From NCBI GenBank assembly GCA_054661495.1, contig BAAFSQ010000098.1:1405-33404 (forward strand): DNA of 32,000 nt. The letters are read 5' to 3'. Below the pieces are notes generated by a model that saw only the letters and a program-made list of their open reading frames with translations, was not told where the DNA came from and did no database searches. Position numbers and translations under genes: made by a program. This DNA comes from Zygophlyctis sp. KS116 (taxonomy: Eukaryota; Fungi; Chytridiomycota). Positions 5,754 to 21,440 of the stretch are shown piece by piece (position 1 is the first letter of the stretch; every line of letters starts with the position of its first letter).

Positions 5754-6693
5754 CTATTTCGGTAACAATACAATTTCATCCTTATTCATACGATCTAAAA
5801 TTGGTCTTTCCCATAAATTAACCGCAGTATTTGCAACAGCATCAGGATCAATATGTTTTGTAATATTTAATACTAAATCATCAAAGTCTTGCTGCACTGT
5901 AATCTTTAAAATTTTCCTTTTCACCGACAATAATAAAGAAAGTCCGACATATCCTAGAATCGCATCTTCTCCGGCAATCACAATATCCCAAATCCCTTCT
6001 AAAGTTCCATATGGAAGTACATTTGAAAAGAATGCAGCAAACCACCTATTGTTTAAAATTTAACATAATTCCATACCATGAACACTTTTGCAATTTAAAA
6101 CCTTCCAGATGTATATACATTACATAATCATGAACTTTTAAAAGTTCAGCCATGAAGTCTATTTTATTTGAAATAAAATAAGAATCTTGATCAACATCTA
6201 ATGGAACAGAGCATTGTTGTATAAACCCCCTAAATAGTATAAAAGCTTCGGTCATGCCTTGTATAGAAATATCCTGAAATGCTTTAGATAACGAAATCAG
6301 ATGATCTGGACACTTTTTCTGAATTTGATTAAGAAATTCAATTGGCGAGATCGTATCTAAAGATTGCACGCACAATAAAACCCCTCTGGTTAATAATTCA
6401 TCGTCTGAAATATCAGTTTCACAAATCCTTTTAATACAATTTAAAATCTGATGAATCTCATCATGTTGATTCTCCTGAGCAAATTCCCACATTTTCTTAA
6501 GCGTCGGCCAACATTTTAACAAAACTTTCCAAACCAATGGTCTATAAGAATGAGGAATCCGAACCCATAAACATAATTTCTGAAATTTAGAGATATTCAA
6601 CGGCTCTTCATTTAATGCAATCGTAAGAGAAGATTGTACTTCGACCGATTTAACCCCCAAAGTAGAATAATAATTCTTTCTAAAATTATCCAT
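5754..6693 (-). CDS. TBC1D7: TBC1 domain family member 7 (TSC complex subunit) homolog
   Basis: MDNFRKNYYSTLGVKSVE...IPHSYRPLVWKVLL matches the TBC1D7 N-terminus as I recall it (NFRSVYYEKVG...SMYRALVWKVLL). One 31-nt intron near 6046-6076. The start may extend to the in-frame ATG at 6828. Confidence 0.85.
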
Positions 6694-6864
6694 TACTATA
6701 CAATTTCTTGATCTTTGTTGAACCGTCGAACCGTTACCACTTACACCCTCAGAGCAATGTCTTTCAATAGTGTTTGATTGTACAAGATACAGAAGCGTAT
6801 CCAATGATTCATTTAATAAACTCATCATCTAATAGTATTAAATATAATTTCTTAGAAAATGCAT

Positions 6865-7305
6865 TTATTTCTTTAGATTTGGTGTCCATGATTCAGGAGT
6901 GAAATCAGTCTTTGGTAATGCAGAATGTTTCTTGTCCAATTCCAACTTTTTGACATTTTCCTGAATTCGCTGATATGCTTCTTGAGCCATTATCAATTCC
7001 TAACGTTAATACAATCATAATACTTGTTGAGTCGGAGGTTCAGATCGGGTATGACTTAACCAAGATCGCCATTGAACAGGCAAATCGGTTTCTGAATACT
7101 CAAATGCCTTTTTGTTACCGTCGACGTATTCAACCTTTCGCTTATAATAACTGCCGACCAGATCTAACATTAAACACATGTAAGTATTACCTTTAGACTC
7201 AAAATAACAATTTCCTTGAAGATCAGATCCGATATACTTGTAGTCTGAAGGGATCCAATTCTTCTTCTTAAGAAAGATTAATCCGCTGTTCAAAAGTCTA
7301 AACAT
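6865..7305 (-). CDS. NDUFA12-family protein (NDUFAF2/mimitin-like complex I assembly factor)
   Basis: IGSDLQGNCYFE...RKVEY...LPVQWRSWLSHTRSEPPT and C-terminal FTPESWTP; introns at 7164-7190 and near 7000-7023. Confidence 0.85.
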
Positions 7306-7362
7306 TCACAACAGAAGTACTTGTGGCCGTAAAAACTTCCGGAAAGGTTCCGAATAGATAGG

Positions 7363-9697
7363 ATGGATGATCAGTTGGCTAAAAAAAAGTAATTAATAAT
7401 ACATTAATAATTATAGGAAAATCATTCCTGGAGATGTAGTATTGCATCCATCGGATTCAGCAATCATTATCAATTATACAATGCGCATGTATAATTCACA
7501 AAATGATTTAGATCAAGAGTCGAATCATCAGAAAATGTAATTACAAACTATTAATGGAAAGAATTAGAATCAAGATTTCTCAAAAATCAAATATTAAACA
7601 ATTGGCGTCTGAAATTGTTGAAAAATGTAAATTACTAGGCGCAAATCGGACTTTAAAAGTACAAGAATTGTTACAATGTCTATTAAAGCGTAAGATGGAA
7701 CCAGGTTATGAGTCAAGGCAATCATTAAATAAGGATGAGAACTCAGATTATTTAATCGGAGCAAGGGAGGCTGTTGATTTTATAGTGCCACCAAGTATGG
7801 ATTTTATTGAGGAATATATTGAAAGTCTTTATGAAGGAATTAAAGAAAAGTTGATTGCTACAAGAAAGATTTTATATTTGGCAAAAATTCCAGAGAATAT
7901 GGAAACTTTATTGAAAAATGGTAATTTGTAAACTTAATCAATTTAGAGTCATTAATGTCGGCATTAACAAGAGTGTTACGTGAAGATACAAAGAGAAGTT
8001 TAGAGTTGATTACAAACATTATCTTTATTTTTTTCTGTTTTTCAACTTTTTCAGATTTTCATTCACTAATCACTGCAAATAAATTGGGGGATATGTGTTT
8101 GAAAATTATTGATCAAGAAAAGATGCGATGGAGTTTATGGAAAGATGATTTTGAAAAAAGTATGTCTGGAAAAGGATCAAGTCAAGATTTAGATATAAAC
8201 CAAGCAAAATTTAAGAGTCGATTGAAACGACAAGATCAGCTTTTGTTTTGTAAATTTAAAGTTCCATTAATACTAGTGACATTTAATTTGCTCTTAAATT
8301 TGGCAGAAGATTTGACGCTTGAAGTTAAAATGATTAAAAGAGGAATCATTCCGAGTTTGATGATGATGCTGGATCGCCCTTCTTCGGAATTACTTTTATG
8401 CGTAGTTACATTTTTAAAGAAATTAAGTGTTTTTGAAGAAAACAAGAATGAAATGCTAAAGGTATTTCAAACGCAAGAATTAATAATTAGGATGAAACGT
8501 TTATTGAGCGTTTAATTTCTCTTGTTCCAAGTGACAATGATGATCTTCATGAACTTACTTTTAGGCTTATTTTAAATCTAAGCCATGATGTAAAAGTTCG
8601 GAGTCTTCTTGTCAAGAATTTATTTCTTGGGAAACTTCATGCATTTTTCGAGCATGATCCTCTTTCTGAAATTGTTCTATCTCTTTTATATCAAGTTAGC
8701 ATTGATGAAAAAAACAGAAATAACCTTGCGTTTCAAGAATGTATTCCTTCAGTAAGACTTTTAAATTGTAATGTAGTAGCTAGTAAATATTTTGCTAAAG
8801 ACAGAATTTAATCCTGTTCCGATTGCACATGTCGCACTGTTAATTAACTTGGCTTCGATTCCTACAAATGTAAAACTCATTTGTAAAGACAATCAATTAA
8901 AATACATTTGTAAAAGAGCTATTAAAACCAGTGATTACACTCTCTTAAAACTGCTAAGAGTCTTATCTATTCACGATGATATAAAAATGCAATTCTTGGT
9001 ATTATACTTTTTCTAACTCTAAGGATTATATTGATGACTTTTTAGCCATAATAACGAAAACCAAAAACACTCAAATGACTATCGAATGTCTTGGAATACT
9101 ATGTAACATTGGAACCATTCCAAACTTTGATTTTACAAAGTGTATCAAAAGCTATCAAATCATGCCATTCTTAATTTCCACATTGTCAAAATCAAGTGAA
9201 TCTACATCACTAAATGAAAATGATGATTTACTACTTGAAGTAATTGTATTGATTGGTAACATGTTGAATGATCCTAATGTTATTCCAATCCTACTAGACA
9301 GTGGAATCCCAAAACTCATTGTTAACTTGCTATTATGTAAATTATTAAAATTATAATCAAAATAGCCAAAGAGGAAGATGATGAAATAATTCTTCAACTT
9401 TTATATTGCATCAATAGACTCTTGTATAATGAAATCTGCAGAGAAATATTATTATCTAGCACAGGTAATTTATTAAATTCTTAAAACTAGACTTGATTAC
9501 TTATTTAATTGATCTCCATAATGATGAATGCTCCCCAATCAGATCCCTTTCAGAAAATTGCCTAGATCTTATAATGGTAAAACTTAAAAATCTAACCAAA
9601 GGACTCTTCCCCCCAAAACACACTACTAATCAGACAAATGAAATTCCAAAATCACAATCTAAAATGGCTTGAAGCAGTTTCTAACATTGAGGTTTAA
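7363..9697 (+). CDS. KAP3: Kinesin-associated protein 3 (kinesin-II accessory subunit, intraflagellar transport)
   Basis: Spliced N-terminus KRKIIPGDVVLHPSDSAIIINY...QKIIRIK...LASEIVEKCKL; YIESLYE; ALTRVLRED; LLLNLAED; FLKKLSVFEENK; KEEDDEIILQ; C-terminal KFQNHNLKWLEAV. Many micro-introns. Confidence 0.93.
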
Positions 9698-10136
9698 TTG
9701 GAACAAAACTTAATTGTGAAGCGATTGGCAATTTAATTTTTCCAATTTCCTCAATAGTCTTCCAATTAGAATCATTAATTTCTGATCTTGGTATAAAATA
9801 AACCTCTTCTGACCAAGGCTGCGATACACTTACTAATAAAGATTGATTACAATTTAAGAATGTTAAAATTGGAAAATGCTGAAAGAGAGTCGACGGTTCA
9901 GAATTCTTATTAATAATCACAATTCCATGCATTGATCTAGACTGCAACAGATCAGTAACACTTGATAGTCCCTTGATAGTACTAGATCTTACTAGATCTG
10001 ATAAGACTGACAATACCGATGCATCATTGATAATAGTCCAATCATATTTGTAGGGATGATGTAATGAAAACTTCATTCTAAAGTAAAATTTGTAAGCACT
10101 TGGAATCTCTATTTTACATATGCTTGATGCATTCAT
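9681..10136 (-). CDS. Hypothetical protein
   Basis: 151-aa ATG ORF with globular-looking composition; 3' end overlaps the KAP3 stop; no family recognised. Confidence 0.5.
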   Translation of the reverse strand: MNASSICKIEIPSAYKFYFRMKFSLHHPYKYDWTIINDASVLSVLSDLVRSSTIKGLSSVTDLLQSRSMHGIVIINKNSEPSTLFQHFPILTFLNCNQSLLVSVSQPWSEEVYFIPRSEINDSNWKTIEEIGKIKLPIASQLSFVPIKPQC

Positions 10137-13509: not shown

Positions 13510-16500
13510 TTAATCTTTCAGTTTAAGAAAGTTCATTTTGGCAGCAAGTAATGTAGAAATCTCAGCCTCGAAACCTTTTATCTAGTGATATGAACCAAAG
13601 CTTCAATAATTACCTTTGTTTCATTAGCTTCCCTTATTTTCAGAGGTGTCTTCTCATAACCTTCAGATTCCTTTTTCTTCACTAATGTATCGAGATTTGA
13701 TTGAATACTTTCAATTTTGTTGTCAATTTTCTTAACTTCTTCATCAAAGTTGATCATCCCTCGGACAAGCAAATAAACATTACAGTCTTCTGAAATATTA
13801 TACGGTGCGCAGCCATCTGGGGCCGAGGCGCCCTTCTTAACAGCATAAACATTATCACACCCCTTAATCATGGATGTAATAACCGACAAGTGTGATCCAA
13901 CCAAGCTAATAAAATGATCATTTATCGAATCAACATATACTATATTTCATTAGAATATAACTTAAAATACCTGTTGCTCCTTTCTTAATACCATAATCTG
14001 AAATTAGAGATCGTGAGGCGTGGATCACTTTATTGAGCATTTCAAATTGCTCTACGGCTCCTGTATTGTTCCATTCAATATTCTTTTCCATATTAATAGA
14101 AAAAAATTACCTCCATTGGGAAATCTGAGATCATGATAGATTCGCCTCGAAAAGTAGAATCAGGGTGTCTTGGTAATCTTTGATATAATTCTTCCGTAAC
14201 AAAAGGCATAAATGGATGCATAAGTTTCAGGCCATATTCAAGGCATGTATAAAGAGTTTCTTGAGTAGCAGCCTTAGCTCTTAAGTCATCGCCGTCCAAG
14301 ATGGGTTTACATATTTCCTAGGAAAATTAAAAGAAAAGATTGAATACCACATAAACATCACATAGATCATAGAGCCAGAATTGATGAATGGCAGAGGTGG
14401 CTTGCATAAAATTCATCTGTTCCAAATTCGAGTCAATATCTTTTATGGTAGAATTAAGTTTATGCAATATCCACAAATCCATTATTGATTCTCTTCCCGA
14501 AAACTAAACATTTGAGCCAAATTTAAATATCTTACTTCAAAGGATTTTTTAGGCTTATAATCGTCCCCTAGTTTCAATAAAGCAAACCGCGTAGCATTCC
14601 AAAGTTTGTTGCAGAACTTTCGGTAGCCATCAACGCGCAGAATGTCCAAATTAATGTCCCTTCCTGACGACGTATATGCTAGCAAGGTGAACCTAAGAGC
14701 GTCTGCACCACATTCAGGAATTCCATTTGGAAAATCCTGTTTTTGTCCTTGTTGAGCCTTTTTAACCTCACGAGGATCAAGATTTCCAATTAGCAGTCGC
14801 GCTTGCAATTCTTCCAGACTTATTCCACTAATTACATCTAATGGATCTATGACATTTCCAAGAGATTTAGACATTTTCCTTCCATGAGCATCTCGAACCA
14901 TGGCGTGGCAAAATACATTTGAAAAAGGTATCTTTCCGGTCAATTTAAGTCCTAACATGACCATGCGAGCTACCCAAAAGAATAAAATATCCCAACCAGT
15001 CTCCAAAAGGGTATTGGGATAGAAATGATCAAAATCTGGTGTCTTTTCAGGCCATCCCATAATTGAAAAAGGCCACAAGCCTGAAGAAAACCAGGTGTCT
15101 AAAACATCTTCGTCTTGATGGAGAGTTATGCTACTTTTACCCACCCCAGGAAACCTCTTGAGTGCTTTATCTAAGGCCTCGCTTTCTGATCTACCTGAAA
15201 CCCAACAACTCTCATCATCTCTTGAATTAGAAAGGCCTGAAACTTCAACAAAGTATGCGGGAATTCGATGTCCCCACCACAATTGGCGTGAAATGCACCA
15301 GTCTTGAATATTTTCAAGCCATCTAAACCATTCATTTTCTGAAGTCTGTGGAGAGATTTTCAATTCACCTGAACGAACGGCCTCCATTGCGGGGATTGCC
15401 AAGTTGGAACAGTCTACCCACCATTGAGGCTTCATCAAAGGTTCAACTATATTTCCTGATCTTCCACATATAGGGATTACCATCTTATTATCTTCAGTCT
15501 TAATATAAAGACCTTTTTCTTTTAGTGCTTCTAAAATCGCAACACGAGCATCAAAGCGCTGCAACCCCTTAAAAGAGCCTCCATTTTCATTTATCTTTCC
15601 TTCATCAGTGAAAATATTAATAAACTCCAACTTATTTCTCTGTCCAACTTTGTAATCATTAAAATCATGAGCAGGTGTAATTTTGACAGCACCACTTCCA
15701 AATTCAGGATCTGGATATTCATCAGCAATAATGGGTACTCTTCTTTCCAAGAAAGGATGAATAGCCAATTTACCATGTAGATGCTATAAATTAAAAAACT
15801 TTTAAATCCATACCTTGTATCTATTATCTGACGGATGAACGGCAATAGCTGTATCCCCCAACATAGTCTCTAAACGAGTCGTAGCAACAATAATTCTTTC
15901 ATCTAAAATAAATCTACTAATATGTATACCTGAATTTTCAATTTCATAGGCAAATGAAATCAAAACTCCAAACTCATATTTTTTCTTTGGATCATGATCT
16001 GGTACTGCCATTAATGTTCTACCTTCCAACTCCTTATTTTCAACTTCCAAATTAGACAGCGCAGTTTTTAACTTGGTGCACCAATTAACCAATCTATTCG
16101 CCCTATAAATAACTTTTTCCTCGTGAAGACGAACAAAAGCCTCTGTTACAGCTTTACTTAGAGATGGATCCATTGTAAACTTTGCTCTTGACCAATCTGT
16201 GGAAGATCCTAATTTTTTCAATTGATTATAAATCCTTTCAACATAACTAAAATTAAAAGGATAAAAAATTACATATCTTTCCAGTCCATAACTTCATGAA
16301 TAAATGCTGATCGACCTAGTTCATGCCTTGTGATCCCTTTTTCCTTCATAAGCTTTTTTTCAACAACAACTTGTGTAGCTATACCTGCATGATCGCATCC
16401 AGGATTATACAAGACAGTTTTTCCCTTCATTCTATTCCATCTAATAAGACAATCCTGAATAGAATTAGTCAATGCATGACCTAGATGTAGAGAACCGGTT

Positions 16501-16850
16501 ACATTTGGCGGAGGAATAGGAATCACAAAAGTTCCTTTTTCACTTGGTTTCCCATTTGGCAACCAAGGCTCAAAATAAGCCTCCTTTTCCCACCATGAAT
16601 ACCATGATGATTCAACTTGCCTCGGTTTATAACCAGTAGCCATTACATCGGACAAATCCTTTTTGTTTCCGGGAACTGTCCGATCGACCCATTCTTCCTC
16701 TTTTGGTTGCGAACTGACCGACTCTTCCTTTTTAACAGACTTTTGACCGATTTTAGCCTTTTCTTCTGCCAACTTTGCCATCTTTGCCAAATACTTTTTA
16801 TTCTTGGCTTCATTCTTTAGAGAATTCTTTGATTTGGCAGCTTCACTCAT
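13510..16850 (-). CDS. VAS1: Valyl-tRNA synthetase
   Basis: [13 protein letters not shown] (HIGH-like), [40 protein letters not shown]; multiple micro-introns. Confidence 0.98.
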
Positions 16851-17058
16851 TGATCTCTTTAAACACTGGCCTAGTATTTTTTTCACCTTGTGCCTCAGTA
16901 GGGAATGTAAATTTGACAATGATTCTATTAAAAAATATCTACTTGGTATCTAAATTTAATCTACAAACTACTTCTAATTGACGGTCTTGGAGGCGCAGAA
17001 ACAAGATCTGATAGATCCAAGTGCTCAGCATGGCGTTAAAATCTATTTTTAGAATGGG

Positions 17059-17068
17059 CTATAAATAG
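17059..17068 (+). promoter_or_regulatory. TATA box (ctataaatag) upstream of the secreted LRR gene; duplicated at 20076-20085
   Basis: TATAAATA about 40 bp upstream of ATG 17102. Confidence 0.55.
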
Positions 17069-17101
17069 GTGGTTGCCGTAAAAGAAGGCATTTAAAAAAG
17101 T

Positions 17102-17501
17102 ATGCTATCAATTACATTCAAAAACACTATCTTACTCATGACAGTTGCTCTCTCTGCATTGATCACTAACGTTGATGCAGTGGCCAACTGTAACACTGCG
17201 TCGAACCAATGCTGTTGGGTACGTCAAGTTCGGACAGAACTGGGAGGGAATGAAAACAGTATTGCCAAATTCAATTGTTGTGGTAAAAAGGGAGTTCGTT
17301 GCGGCTCAGGAAATGTCACAGAACTAGACTGGAGAAGTCATGGACTTGATCCCACAAAAATTCCTACTCAAAGAGCGTTACTGAATTTGCCCGGACTTAA
17401 AGAAATGTAATATTTACTTTTAATTAATCATCAGAAAACTTGGAGCGATTTGCACAGATCAGAGTCTTCCTGGTGGAAGAAGTTGGTTATACTGCTCTTG
17501 A
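17102..17501 (+). CDS. Small secreted cysteine-rich protein with plant-type LRR N-cap and one LRR (copy 1, ~123 aa)
   Basis: Signal peptide, then CC...CCGKKGVRC...VTELDW...IP...LLNLPGLKEIKL, resembling LRRNT_2 plus a first LRR. A 28-nt intron (17407-17434) extends the ORF to TGA at 17499-17501. Confidence 0.75.
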
Positions 17502-17634
17502 GCACTGCATCATATGTCGCTAAACCAAAAAATGTTAACGAATGAAGCACCAACAATTGTACTTTTAGTGCTGTATTCAAAATAAGAAATGGTTTATGAC
17601 AAAAACTGAGTCTTTATTATTCACAATGAGCTAA

Positions 17635-17767
17635 TCATCTACTCAAATCATTCATTTTCCGATTTAATTTGCTGATTCTATCCCTATTTTCATCAGCACG
17701 ATCTTGTACTCTGTCCAATTGATGTCGTTGATTTTCTAATTCGTTATTCATTGATGCTCCCATCATT
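17635..17767 (-). pseudogene. Truncated Sec9 3' fragment (last 43 codons), fused in frame to insert sequence
   Basis: Identical to 20652-20784. Confidence 0.9.
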
Positions 17768-19782
17768 TTTACACAAGCATAGTTTTTCTCTACAAGTCTA
17801 TAAGAGGGTGTCAAGTGTGAAATATTTTCCGACATACCAAAGCAGATTACTCTGGTAAATCATCTTTTACCAGAGATTCCGCAGAACTTGGATCAGATTT
17901 CAAGAAGAGCCTCAGAGCCTCTCTTCGTCAACTAAAAATTTAAACATTCTAATCTGTCCATTGCCAAACAATCAATGCTTCTAATCATAAGTGTGAAACA
18001 TGAATTTCACTAGCGGCAGCTAAATCGAATCATAGTCTTTTCATGAATCCTGAAGCTCTGAATTTATCATCACAAATTAAATATAGCTTTCTTATCGAAG
18101 CAGTTTGACGTTAATTTATGGCAGCCAAATAGCATGCTGAAGGTAACCAAAAAATTTCTTTCTTGAAACAAAATGCCAAAGCGATTCCTCAATGTCGAAT
18201 ACTCTGGAAGTAAAACCAGTATATATGTCACTGACTTTGAAGACCTGAGTGAAGTACAGATAGCTGTCAAGGAAGCATTTTCTATTGATGTCGGTTTTGG
18301 TCTTATTCGACTCTACGACCTCCAAGGCCAGCTCATCACAGACTTGGACGACATCCCCAAAGACTATTACAAGAAGCTGAAGGATGGCGGTCTCTTTCTT
18401 GCTGTTCATTGTCCAAAACAAGAAACTGTGTCTGGTTCTTGTCCACCTAAACGAGCAAGGTCGGCTAGTAGTCTCGCAAGCAGAGCCAGCAATTGCACAG
18501 AATTGAATCAGGATTCTTTCATAGACAGAATTTTGGATAGAGATACCAATGGATGTGTTTTGACAGGAAAAGATGAACTGGATTGCCAGGCCTGTCATAT
18601 TGTTCCTTGGGTTTACTTTCAAAAATATGATTTGGTGGGGCAAGAAATCTGGAACAGTCTATTTCCTTTCAGTTGCTTCAACCCGGTTCATCAAGTGATG
18701 GATGTACGTAATGGTATATTGATGTGGGGCCCCCTTAATGCTCAGTTTGACAAATTCGCTTTTACTATCATTAAAAAGGGCAGTGTTTACGAAGTTGAAG
18801 CTCTTCATGAAGATGAAATGGAAACTCCAAAAAAAATCACGGCTAAGAAGATTCAAATTACGGTGGCTAAATTGGATGGGAAGCAGTTCAAGTTTGATGA
18901 TGACAAAAAGGATATCTGGCCAGGGGAGAAATTTCTTCAACTGCACAACCGAATCTTCCACAAAAAACGAGAAGCGAATAGACTTAGCGCTTCGGCGGAA
19001 GTTAAAGAAATGACGGAGGAGGATTCAGCTCAAACAATAACTGATGAACGAGAAGAGAGTATCATAAAGGTCAAAAATTGGGATGCTCTGTATAGTGCAC
19101 AAACTCATTATGTCAATAATACCTAGATTTACCGTATTATTTTTGACAGATTATCCAAAATATCCGCTTAACGATACAAAGAGATGTGTCATTCAATTGG
19201 ATTGTTTTTGTGAGTCTGGCACTGAGAGCTGCCTTTAATATTAGGCAATTAGATCCTGATAAGATTCTAAAAGCTAAAATCAGATTCTAATTAGATACTA
19301 AATGCCAAACGTTTTTGTTGAGAATAGAGAATCAAACGTCTCCGTGCTGATCAGGTTTTGTAGCGTAAGTGATAGATTCTGTCAGTTTATATTTTTAGAT
19401 GATTGATCGCAAAATATATATTAGTAATGTTAAATTCGGTGAGAAAAAAAGTACTATTGATATTATTTCATGTTTTGGCTCATGGAATTAAATGACTAGA
19501 CTGGCTCGGCATATCTTGATTGGAAAGGTAACACTAAAAGCCCAGAAAAGTGCCCGCAAACCATTGCCACAATAATCCGCTATCTTGAGACGATCACAAT
19601 TAATTTTAGTGTTACGGTGACTGGATCACAGAATTGAAAGAGGGGAACGAAGATAATTAACTTGGCGCAAATGATTTCCTTGAATGGAAGTTCTCATAAA
19701 CCCAACAACTTGACGGAGAAAGCACCCCACAATTGTGCTTTTAGTACAGAATTCAAAATAAAAATGGTTTATGACAAAAACC
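17768..19782 (+). mobile_element. 2015-bp inserted cassette carrying an HNH nuclease gene, between 1-kb direct repeats
   Basis: Unique sequence bounded exactly by the two repeat copies. No transposase, RT or clear TIR seen, so mobility is inferred. Confidence 0.6.
18173..19126 (+). CDS. Crinkler-like protein: ubiquitin-like header domain plus HNH_2-type endonuclease
   Basis: Intronless, 317 aa. Residues ~1-80 form a header (MPKRFLNVEY...IRLYDLQGQLITDLDDIP...GGLFLAVH). The nuclease pattern RDTNGCVLTG...ACHIVP...VRNGILM...NAQFDKFAFTI...WPGEKFLQLH is typical of fungal HNH_2 proteins. Confidence 0.85.
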   Translation: MPKRFLNVEYSGSKTSIYVTDFEDLSEVQIAVKEAFSIDVGFGLIRLYDLQGQLITDLDDIPKDYYKKLKDGGLFLAVHCPKQETVSGSCPPKRARSASSLASRASNCTELNQDSFIDRILDRDTNGCVLTGKDELDCQACHIVPWVYFQKYDLVGQEIWNSLFPFSCFNPVHQVMDVRNGILMWGPLNAQFDKFAFTIIKKGSVYEVEALHEDEMETPKKITAKKIQITVAKLDGKQFKFDDDKKDIWPGEKFLQLHNRIFHKKREANRLSASAEVKEMTEEDSAQTITDEREESIIKVKNWDALYSAQTHYVNNT

Positions 19783-19867
19783 CTGCCATCTTTGCCATCT
19801 TTGCCAAATACTTTTTATTCTTGGCTTCATTCTTTAGAGAATTCTTTGATTTGGCAGCTTCACTCAT
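19769..19867 (-). pseudogene. Truncated ValRS 5' fragment running into the insert
   Basis: [28 protein letters not shown] then GFLS-stop inside the insert end. Confidence 0.85.
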
Positions 19868-20784
19868 TGATCTCTTTAAACACTGGCCTAGTATTTTTTT
19901 CACCTTGTGCCTCAGTAGGGAATGTAAATTTGACAATGATTCTATTAAAAAATATCTACTTGGTATCTAAATTTAATCTACAAACTACTTCTAATTGACG
20001 GTCTTGGAGGCGCAGAAACAAGATCTGATAGATCCAAGTGCTCAGCATGGCGTTAAAATCTATTTTTAGAATGGGCTATAAATAGGTGGTTGCCGTAAAA
20101 GAAGGCATTTAAAAAAGTATGCTATCAATTACATTCAAAAACACTATCTTACTCATGACAGTTGCTCTCTCTGCATTGATCACTAACGTTGATGCAGTGG
20201 CCAACTGTAACACTGCGTCGAACCAATGCTGTTGGGTACGTCAAGTTCGGACAGAACTGGGAGGGAATGAAAACAGTATTGCCAAATTCAATTGTTGTGG
20301 TAAAAAGGGAGTTCGTTGCGGCTCAGGAAATGTCACAGAACTAGACTGGAGAAGTCATGGACTTGATCCCACAAAAATTCCTACTCAAAGAGCGTTACTG
20401 AATTTGCCCGGACTTAAAGAAATGTAATATTTACTTTTAATTAATCATCAGAAAACTTGGAGCGATTTGCACAGATCAGAGTCTTCCTGGTGGAAGAAGT
20501 TGGTTATACTGCTCTTGAGCACTGCATCATATGTCGCTAAACCAAAAAATGTTAACGAATGAAGCACCAACAATTGTACTTTTAGTGCTGTATTCAAAAT
20601 AAGAAATGGTTTATGACAAAAACTGAGTCTTTATTATTCACAATGAGCTAATCATCTACTCAAATCATTCATTTTCCGATTTAATTTGCTGATTCTATCC
20701 CTATTTTCATCAGCACGATCTTGTACTCTGTCCAATTGATGTCGTTGATTTTCTAATTCGTTATTCATTGATGCTCCCATCATT
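19783..20784 (+). repeat. 1002-bp direct repeat, copy 2
   Basis: Matches 16766-17767. Confidence 0.97.
20119..20518 (+). CDS. Small secreted cysteine-rich LRR-cap protein (copy 2, identical)
   Basis: Identical to 17102-17501. Confidence 0.75.
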
Positions 20785-21440
20785 CTCAGTCTCCCAAGAC
20801 CAGCAGAGATTTGATTTAGATTAGAATCTATTCCTTCTTCTACAGAATCCCTTTCTAGTCCATCTGGAGTTGAATGAATATGACTAACTCTTCCTCCAAC
20901 AGATGATCCTCTAGAAGAAATAGCTGGAGCAGATGAAGAATTATTAGCTCTAGGATCTACTCTTTTTCTATTTTCTTTCTCAGTCTTTGATTCTCTTTCT
21001 GCAGCCTTTTTTTCTAAAGCTTCCTGTTTCTTTTTAGAGGATTTACTTCCAATTGCAGGTAAAAAGAACCAACCATTTAATGCCTTTAATCTAGTAGTTT
21101 TCGTTTCAGATATTTTAGCATGCTGATCAGCTTCATCTAATCTTTTATCAACTTTTTCCAATTGTTCACTCTGTAGAGCCAATTTTGATAAATTAGAAGT
21201 TGCAATTTCAGATGCAATCGTTAATTTTCCCAATGCTCTTGAAGAGGCATCCAATGAATCATTTTGAATTTGTCTAGTATGACTTGTATAATCATTTGAA
21301 CCATAATTAAAGCCATTGCCTTTGATTTCTTCTTCAGCTCTTGCCCATTTATTATCATCAGATCCTTGTTCTCTTTCTCTTGGTTCTCTTGATGATGATC
21401 CTCTAGATGATCCCTTTGAGGGGTTGTTGTTATAAGACAT
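20652..21440 (-). CDS. SEC9: Sec9/SNAP-25 family Qbc-SNARE
   Basis: Two SNARE motifs (SLDASSRAL...LALQSEQLEKVDKRLD and IDSNLNQISAGLGRLRMMG...ELENQRHQLDRV). Confidence 0.92.
   Translation of the reverse strand: MSYNNNPSKGSSRGSSSREPREREQGSDDNKWARAEEEIKGNGFNYGSNDYTSHTRQIQNDSLDASSRALGKLTIASEIATSNLSKLALQSEQLEKVDKRLDEADQHAKISETKTTRLKALNGWFFLPAIGSKSSKKKQEALEKKAAERESKTEKENRKRVDPRANNSSSAPAISSRGSSVGGRVSHIHSTPDGLERDSVEEGIDSNLNQISAGLGRLRMMGASMNNELENQRHQLDRVQDRADENRDRISKLNRKMNDLSR

Follow-up and report, generated by a model that had tools for sequence, protein, structure and literature searches.

An orphan copy of an LRR gene 3′ end at the edge of an insert

A 32,000-nucleotide stretch of the genome of the chytrid Zygophlyctis sp. 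KS116 (GenBank assembly GCA_054661495.1, contig BAAFSQ010000098.1, positions 1,405 to 33,404 of the forward strand; hereafter the window) contains a block of some 1 kb that is present twice in direct orientation, with an insert carrying an HNH gene between the copies. A sequence of 85 bp at the right end of this insert resembles one inside the block, downstream of a small secreted leucine-rich repeat (LRR) gene. Analysis of the two sequences indicates that the resident one is the 3′ end of the LRR gene, and we put the probability that its diverged counterpart is repair or duplication debris of local origin at about one half. The original prediction had offered two other accounts of the match: a conserved end common to a family of cargo cassettes, which would make the LRR gene an older insertion of the same family, or the homology that guided the HNH cassette to this place by template switching.

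We refer to the duplicated block as A, to the insert between its copies as I, to the outer flanks as L and R, to the module resident in A as m and to its orphan copy in I as m′. Block A is defined by an exact direct repeat of 995 bp (16773–17767 and 19790–20784, offset 3017), which extends with a single mismatch, at 16772, to 16766 and 19783, giving a length of 1,002 bp. Copy 1 (16766–17767) comprises 85 nt of the start of a valine-tRNA ligase (ValRS) gene together with its upstream spacer, the whole of the small LRR gene, m (17521–17606, forward strand) and the last 133 nt of a gene for a Sec9-type t-SNARE. Copy 2 (19783–20784) runs unbroken into the remainder of Sec9 and holds m at 20538–20623 (forward strand), identical to 17521–17606. 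The intact ValRS gene is made up of L and copy 1, and the intact Sec9 gene of copy 2 and R. Insert I (17768–19782; 2,015 bp) is a mosaic with no full-length second copy in the genome assembly, which was searched as 12.7 Mb in 1,175 contigs.

The alignment of m′ (19697–19781, forward strand) with m spans 87 columns with 12 mismatches and 3 gaps, corresponding to an identity of 82.8%, and has an E value of 3.9e-17 in the pairwise comparison and of 1.2e-15 against the genome; the match had been described, and its coordinates given, correctly. The final 20 bases are the same in both sequences, m′ ending in ...TTTATGACAAAAAC. Similarity stops at 19781, one base short of the start of copy 2 at 19783, and in the resident copy at 17606, 28 bp from the Sec9 stop codon. 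No homology between I and block A besides m′ was found by blastn at word size 7 or by tblastx. A genome search with the full 85-bp motif, which the prediction had taken for a possible family-wide end, matched only the three positions in the window, and the last 20-mer and 16-mer and the central 20-mer occur nowhere beyond these three places.

The LRR family 3′ module

Weak genome matches of a profile built from m and m′ fell downstream of three LRR paralogs and yielded a shorter core, the 13-mer AAATGGTTTATGA, with 24 occurrences in the genome and 2 in the control. Outside this locus there are 21 core sites, of which about 15 have a common architecture: an A-rich repeat encoding a Lys-rich tail is followed by ..AACGAATGA (NVNE-stop), by some 30–40 variable bases and by the block AAAATAA(A)AATGGTTTATGA. 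The last of these, present in both m and m′, ends the family similarity, in that resemblance between subfamilies ceases after it at the common boundary ...GGTTTATGA. At 13 of the 14 other sites checked, the core lies 130–640 bp downstream, on the same strand, of the C-terminal Cys-rich exon of a family gene. The module as a whole, of 85 bp, consists of the last seven codons, the stop, a variable stretch, an AATAAA-like signal and the invariant AAATGGTTTATGA, and is found in about 17–20 family members. A family hidden Markov model (HMM) made without the window sequences matches m with an E value of 7e-4, reaching the very end of the profile; the same model matches m′ over its last 20 nt only, with an E value of 0.067.

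We identify m as a copy of this module because of the enrichment of the 13-mer, the common architecture, the location of the sites close to the family exon and the independent HMM match. It reads ..KPKNVNE, stop, AATAAG, AAATGGTTTATGA and then CAAAAAC, and to judge from the sequence it serves the small secreted LRR gene as its functional 3′ end, made up of the last codons, the stop and a 3′ untranslated region (UTR) with a poly(A)-signal-like block. The short invariant 3′ block is a candidate poly(A) or regulatory signal, which would mark a subfamily of fast-evolving secreted LRR genes. The last family codons and stop (NVNE-stop) precede the block in m but not in m′, which reads GACGGAGAAA where the family has its stop, the stop codon being gone. 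Both m and m′ hold CAAAAAC, seven bases past the family boundary, and a common middle part, and as neither of these features is found in any other copy, m and m′ are each other's closest relatives. At one site, m′ retains the base of the family and of a diverged strain (strain B, below), the reference m having changed there.

Genes of the family have many short introns, plant-type LRRs and, in full-length paralogs, a C-terminal Cys-rich domain. The resident gene is a truncated member. Its exon 1 (17102–17410, forward strand; duplicate at 20119–20427) encodes a signal peptide and the N-terminal Cys-rich domain and has at least 54 paralogous matches in the genome; the gene probably carries a short second exon. 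Module m lies after a truncated member with the N-terminal exon only, and m′ has no family sequence or gene upstream: neither tblastx nor a 260-bp family HMM detected, in the part of I that precedes m′, any remains of an LRR gene body. The orphan is the sole gene-less module, and m is its sole close relative in the 12.7 Mb. A second mini LRR gene, composed of an N-terminal domain, one LRR, a Lys-rich tail and the 3′ module, is present at C41 near a contig end (L101:2780–3510), where the module precedes a repeat seen also at two other contig ends.

Other properties of the module were looked for. A stem can be drawn by eye for each subfamily, but a conserved hairpin was rejected on ViennaRNA z-scores near zero in most copies, and an Rfam search across 16500–21000 gave nothing at E ≤ 1. 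Retro-copying of the genes with a tail of the long interspersed nuclear element type was likewise discarded, the members keeping many short introns and the resident cassette containing upstream sequence. In metagenomes, a 19-mer gave 120 chance matches, none of them with family context.

These results bear directly on the suggestion that the end of the module is a cis-acting terminus of a one-ended carrier moving both LRR and HNH cassettes. Both inserted units do have the module where host DNA abuts, and, as predicted, the end is common to a family, lies downstream of effector-like genes and has its boundary at a common base. The family is however one of Cys-rich LRR genes and not of cargo cassettes: all the other copies stand at the 3′ end of intron-bearing LRR family genes, none caps other cargo, and the shared block is the last codons and 3′ UTR of that one family. 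Near-matches to the 16- and 20-mers of m do not exceed the control counts, and the terminal 16- and 20-mers, which are not repeated, have 10 near-matches against about 50 in the control. Moreover, no flanking target duplications were found at the 14 other module-bearing genes, apart from a tandem pair at C197, and the module is missing from the gene-side end of an LRR island (L049, contig C80) that has a perfect target duplication of 25 bp. The boundary of the resident LRR cassette on the side of m can be placed only to 17606–17620, so that the end of m is not established as the end of the cassette. With no inverted copy, an arbitrary left end of I inside a pseudogene, an unrepeated terminal 85-mer and a duplication here of 1,002 bp, we regard a mobile terminus as highly unlikely and do not retain the cassette-terminus claim. 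A related and very doubtful idea is that the module end is a preferred break or priming site, from which gene-carrying DNA would be copied out one-ended and inserted with long, gene-sparing target duplications. If it were true, a single mechanism would account for the arrival of both the LRR and the HNH cassette, and the A+I unit of 3 kb may even now be cycling, as a circle or tandem array to which the I-A-I path of contig L233 (below) could belong.

Composition of the insert

Elsewhere in the genome, I is matched by fragments only, at 77–91% identity. Its left part (17768–18067, reverse strand) is a fragment of an IMPACT/RWD-like pseudogene, 79–84% identical to an intact gene at C198, with stops and an internal deletion of about 260 bp; the open reading frame (ORF) at C198 matches UPF0029 and, below the Pfam cut-off, RWD. 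The A|I junction cuts this pseudogene. The only intact ORF in I is a 317-residue gene (18173–19126, forward strand) with an HNH_2 domain (Pfam PF13391, E 1.3e-8) behind a common N-terminal header. The header (18157–18401) is a high-copy module, 87–88% identical to sequences at C702 and C332, and its contig depth is 6,000–10,000 against 200–600 nearby. Contigs of all four sequencing runs diverge either side of it, at 18150–18157 and 18401. The remainder of the insert as far as m′ (19127–19696, forward strand) is non-coding filler, consisting of a 3′ flank common to header-bearing genes (to about 19278), a piece of a dispersed repeat (19316–19389) and about 300 bp without a match. No transposase is encoded in I, and a partner encoded elsewhere was not searched for. 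Because its left end lies inside a pseudogene, there is no second copy and the junctions are blunt or near-blunt, we conclude that I is not a discrete element with defined ends.

The HNH protein has no relatives in the metagenomes searched. A 157-bp piece at C896 (L007:61–217) matches the final 120 nt of the HNH gene and 36 nt of its 3′ flank at 91% identity; it starts 41 bp past the stop codon of a CobW-like GTPase gene and resembles a remnant of a similar insert. At L234:7900–10339, the ortholog of C181, an HNH_2 gene, a 185-residue gene and an LRR family gene stand in a row between the housekeeping genes SIP1 and XPG, an arrangement which suggests that small islands of this kind collect both nuclease and LRR genes.

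Such islands give some substance to a second explanation of m′, in which I was copied as a single block from an effector island elsewhere. A sister paralog of the LRR gene would have left its decayed 3′ end there, downstream of an HNH gene, and the likeness of m′ to m would be one of common descent. HNH_2 and LRR genes are indeed two genes apart at C181 and L234, LRR genes often form tandem arrays, and in I, which is pieced together from family fragments, the body of the HNH gene has no extant source. The island at L234/C181 was itself considered as the donor and rejected, its HNH protein being only 23% identical and the module absent. Neither a donor nor any other member of the m/m′ subfamily is present in the 12.7-Mb assembly, however, and there is no family homology in I upstream of m′. 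The fragment that landed here must, moreover, have brought with it the one sequence most closely related to the resident tail of the target. We consider an origin of m′ on a donor unlikely, if worth keeping in mind.

Junctions and strain variation

Sequence of the window is present in public lake, freshwater and estuary metagenomes, and the evidence on junctions comes from contigs of four sequencing runs (X1–X4) and from others retrieved by way of their proteins. All four edges (L-A, A-I, m′-A and A-R) occur in independent samples and studies, some of them in diverged strains. Contigs X2, L232 and L233 span A|I, and contigs of X1 and X4 that start 30 bases inside A, one base under a 31-base rule, run on into I; m′|A is seen in X1, X4 and L230, and the passage from A into R in L231 and X3. 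With m′ itself found at 100% identity in L056 and L230, it is most improbable that the A-I-A order or m′ arose in assembly from mis-joined repeats or strains. What speaks for such an artefact is that A collapses to one contig in every short-read assembly and that L233 (JGI 3300046808) follows, over 1–1197, the path I (19196–19269), A (16921–17767), I (17768–18050). This path could come from (A-I)n units in tandem, from a circle of 3 kb or from an assembler's passage through a collapsed repeat. As a gauge of copy number, contig mean depths are uneven and contradictory.

Both junctions of I are blunt or nearly so. At m′|A a single C lies between the two sequences, with 0–1 bp of homology, and the join is out of register: m′ corresponds to block positions 756–841 and is joined to position 1, not to 842. 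This geometry counts against homology-assisted capture, in which the HNH fragment arrived with an m-like tail whose pairing with the resident m directed it to this site or held it there. Although the sole homology between insert and target is m′, which occupies the extreme end of the insert, a copy primed by m′ on m would leave the first 841 bp of the block unduplicated, and the microhomology is 1 bp at most. The predicted template switch guided by m would by the same token have joined position 842, and we find capture of this kind quite improbable. The m′|A seam also shows length variation in a 9-bp unit, GCCATCTTT, of three ValRS codons (window 19783–19810; L230:35–70): two units are present in the window, one fewer in X4 and three in L230. 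In the functional ValRS copy, the unit is fixed and slightly different in sequence.

A diverged strain of about 94% identity, strain B (L231, L232 and L233, from three samples), has the same left junction as the reference; on the right, I is followed as far as 19269 and continues directly with A from 19938. The strain is without the 668 bp of 19270–19937, namely the m′ scrap and a fragment of ValRS. Across the join, L231 and L233 read the heptamer GATTCTA once; the reference has it twice, at 19263–19269 and 19931–19937 (both forward strand), where the two copies bound the missing segment. Arguing from mechanism only, the absence may be a microhomology deletion, since the alternative is an insertion that happened to restore perfect continuity with copy 1. 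As strain B lacks this segment, m′ is dispensable.

Identity between the reference and strain B varies along the locus, from 100% in the ValRS piece, 98.8% in m and 98.5% in the Sec9 piece through 98.2% in the left part of I, 97.4% in R and 95–97% in the spacer and promoter to 91.8% in LRR exon 1. In the last of these (17102–17410 compared with L232:315–626), 30.5 nonsynonymous and 1.5 synonymous differences give a dN/dS of about 6.5 with a dS of 0.022. The changes bunch in residues 55–85, and in each strain both copies hold one allele. The copies of A differ at 0 of 995 positions in the reference and at 1 of 856 in strain B, against about 6% between the lineages, which is a pattern of concerted evolution. 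Their identity therefore says nothing on the age of the event, which predates the split of the strains, and repeat identity in this genome cannot date events of this type. The orphan m′ is too short and too diverged for such homogenisation; its divergence of about 15% is several times the strain dS and similar to that of the IMPACT-like fragment from its source.

A further strain, 98.75% identical (L071, ENA GROS21-1; positions 964–1210), tracks Sec9 to window position 20807, 23 bp from the A2/R boundary. It then has 247 bp without a match in this genome, which would be either a second rearrangement beside the breakpoint or a chimeric scaffold.

The LRR gene as an older insertion

A search with the Sec9 protein returned relatives at 54–67% identity. 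In three of them, with Sec9 60–67% identical (L072, L073 and the P0004 contig), ValRS comes directly after Sec9 on the same strand, across a spacer of 34–70 bp that holds no LRR gene; as in the window, Sec9 has DIM1 on its upstream side in two of the three (L072 and the P0004 contig). Because the two genes are adjacent without an LRR gene in these relatives, we conclude that the LRR gene is an insertion, and that about 700 bp with the LRR gene and m entered the Sec9–ValRS spacer in the window's lineage. This part of the original prediction, an older insertion to be recognised by ValRS–Sec9 adjacency in relatives, is borne out.

The edge of the cassette on the side of ValRS may preserve a trace of that event. 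At 16907–16955 (reverse strand), a possible relic of the Sec9 stop and the start of the spacer can be made out by eye; it has AGTAGAT and TAGAATCATT in common with L073, and TCATTGT in common with the copy beside Sec9. The stretch may be what is left of an old target duplication made by the LRR insertion; local-alignment scores for such a duplication around the cassette are within shuffle noise. The sequences show two nested insertions, both sparing genes, between Sec9 and ValRS, housekeeping genes that are adjacent in relatives.

Origin of the orphan module

We infer that m′ is of local origin and reached its place by a break-repair route. The LRR gene was first inserted in the short Sec9–ValRS spacer. 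A later break would then have been repaired in such a way that 1,002 bp were copied twice and about 2 kb of foreign and scrap DNA was joined between the copies, giving A-I-A and leaving ValRS and Sec9 whole. A short piece of the resident tail would have ended up at the right seam as m′, either as a patch copied during the repair or as a remnant of an earlier local duplication. It would afterwards have decayed, to 15 differences in 87 columns with loss of the stop, while gene conversion kept the 1-kb copies identical. We favour a local origin because a local copy needs no coincidence, which a foreign fragment would. The comparable divergence of the two dead pieces of I, m′ at 83% identity to m and the IMPACT-like fragment at 79–84% to its source, also speaks for a similar age of both.

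Several points weigh against this explanation. No donor has been found for most of I, and such a donor may already have carried an m-like tail. HNH_2 and LRR genes are neighbours elsewhere (C181/L234). Typical products of polymerase theta are smaller and simpler than a templated patch of 85 bp placed at the distal end of 1.9 kb of foreign DNA, and that enzyme is perhaps absent: there is one weak family-A hit (DNA_pol_A, 48.8 bits, in a 923-residue frame), which may be the mitochondrial polymerase. The linear order L-A-I-A-R rests on assembly, and short contigs allow a tandem array or a circle. Finally, loss as against gain of the 668 bp is argued with no outgroup.

Genes flanking and spanning the junctions

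The ValRS gene (14482–16850, reverse strand) has several exons, with NCBIfam valS as its best match and the Pfam domain tRNA-synt_1; its start codon, at 16850, was placed by alignment to the relatives L072 and L073. The Sec9-type t-SNARE gene (20652–21440, reverse strand) encodes 262 residues with a weak V-SNARE_C match, and a 38% identical relative in a Chytridiales genome is named plasma-membrane t-SNARE. In copy 1, the Sec9 stop codon is at 17635–17637, behind a spacer of 28 bp from the end of m.

At the left junction, a chimeric ORF of 66 residues (17635–17835, reverse strand) joins 22 insert-derived residues to the C-terminal SNARE motif of the duplicated Sec9 fragment and again has a weak V-SNARE_C match. 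The duplication boundary sits exactly ahead of a Met-Met pair in this ORF. Gene callers place an ORF of 66 residues at the same position in the strain B contigs L232 and L233.

Comparison with known systems

The VSP genes of Giardia have an invariant CRGKA tail and a conserved poly(A) signal. The LRR module is similar in that a fast-evolving secreted or surface family has a short invariant tail over the last codons, the stop and the poly(A)-signal region; organism, protein family and motif are different, and the function of AAATGGTTTATGA is putative. With one-ended transposition and transposon termini, the locus has in common one conserved and one arbitrary end and a duplicated target. It differs from them in that terminal copies are not repeated, an inverted partner, a transposase and a fixed length of the duplication are lacking, and the conserved end is the 3′ UTR of a gene.

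Closer parallels are found among products of DNA repair. Tandem duplications of about 0.1–10 kb with templated or patchwork insertions at the junction are known from helq-1 mutants of Caenorhabditis elegans, where they arise by end joining of aborted homologous-repair intermediates (PMC8654963). The present locus resembles these events in its direct duplication of about 1 kb, in the DNA at the seam, part of which maps to the flank of the break, and in the little or no homology at the junctions; a direct duplication on both sides of I with 0–1 bp of junction homology fits an end-joining tandem duplication. It departs from them in that the insert is 2 kb long, mostly foreign and contains an intact gene, and in being an old event that has become fixed in wild lineages. 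The patch derived from the flank measures 85 bp and, although it maps to block positions 756–841, is 17% diverged, so that it may or may not have been copied during this event.

Mitochondrial DNA can be captured in end joining as filler at double-strand breaks (PMC2567098). Common to such filler and to I are unrelated scraps joined in a break, blunt or microhomology junctions and the lack of transposon features; the 1,002-bp target duplication, with both neighbouring essential genes whole, sets the present case apart. The 85-bp match had seemed to be evidence for a new cargo element with a defined end. It proves instead to be a conserved tail belonging to a single effector-like gene family, present once as a decayed orphan at what is probably a repair seam, and one line of support for the cassette-terminus model at this locus is thereby removed.

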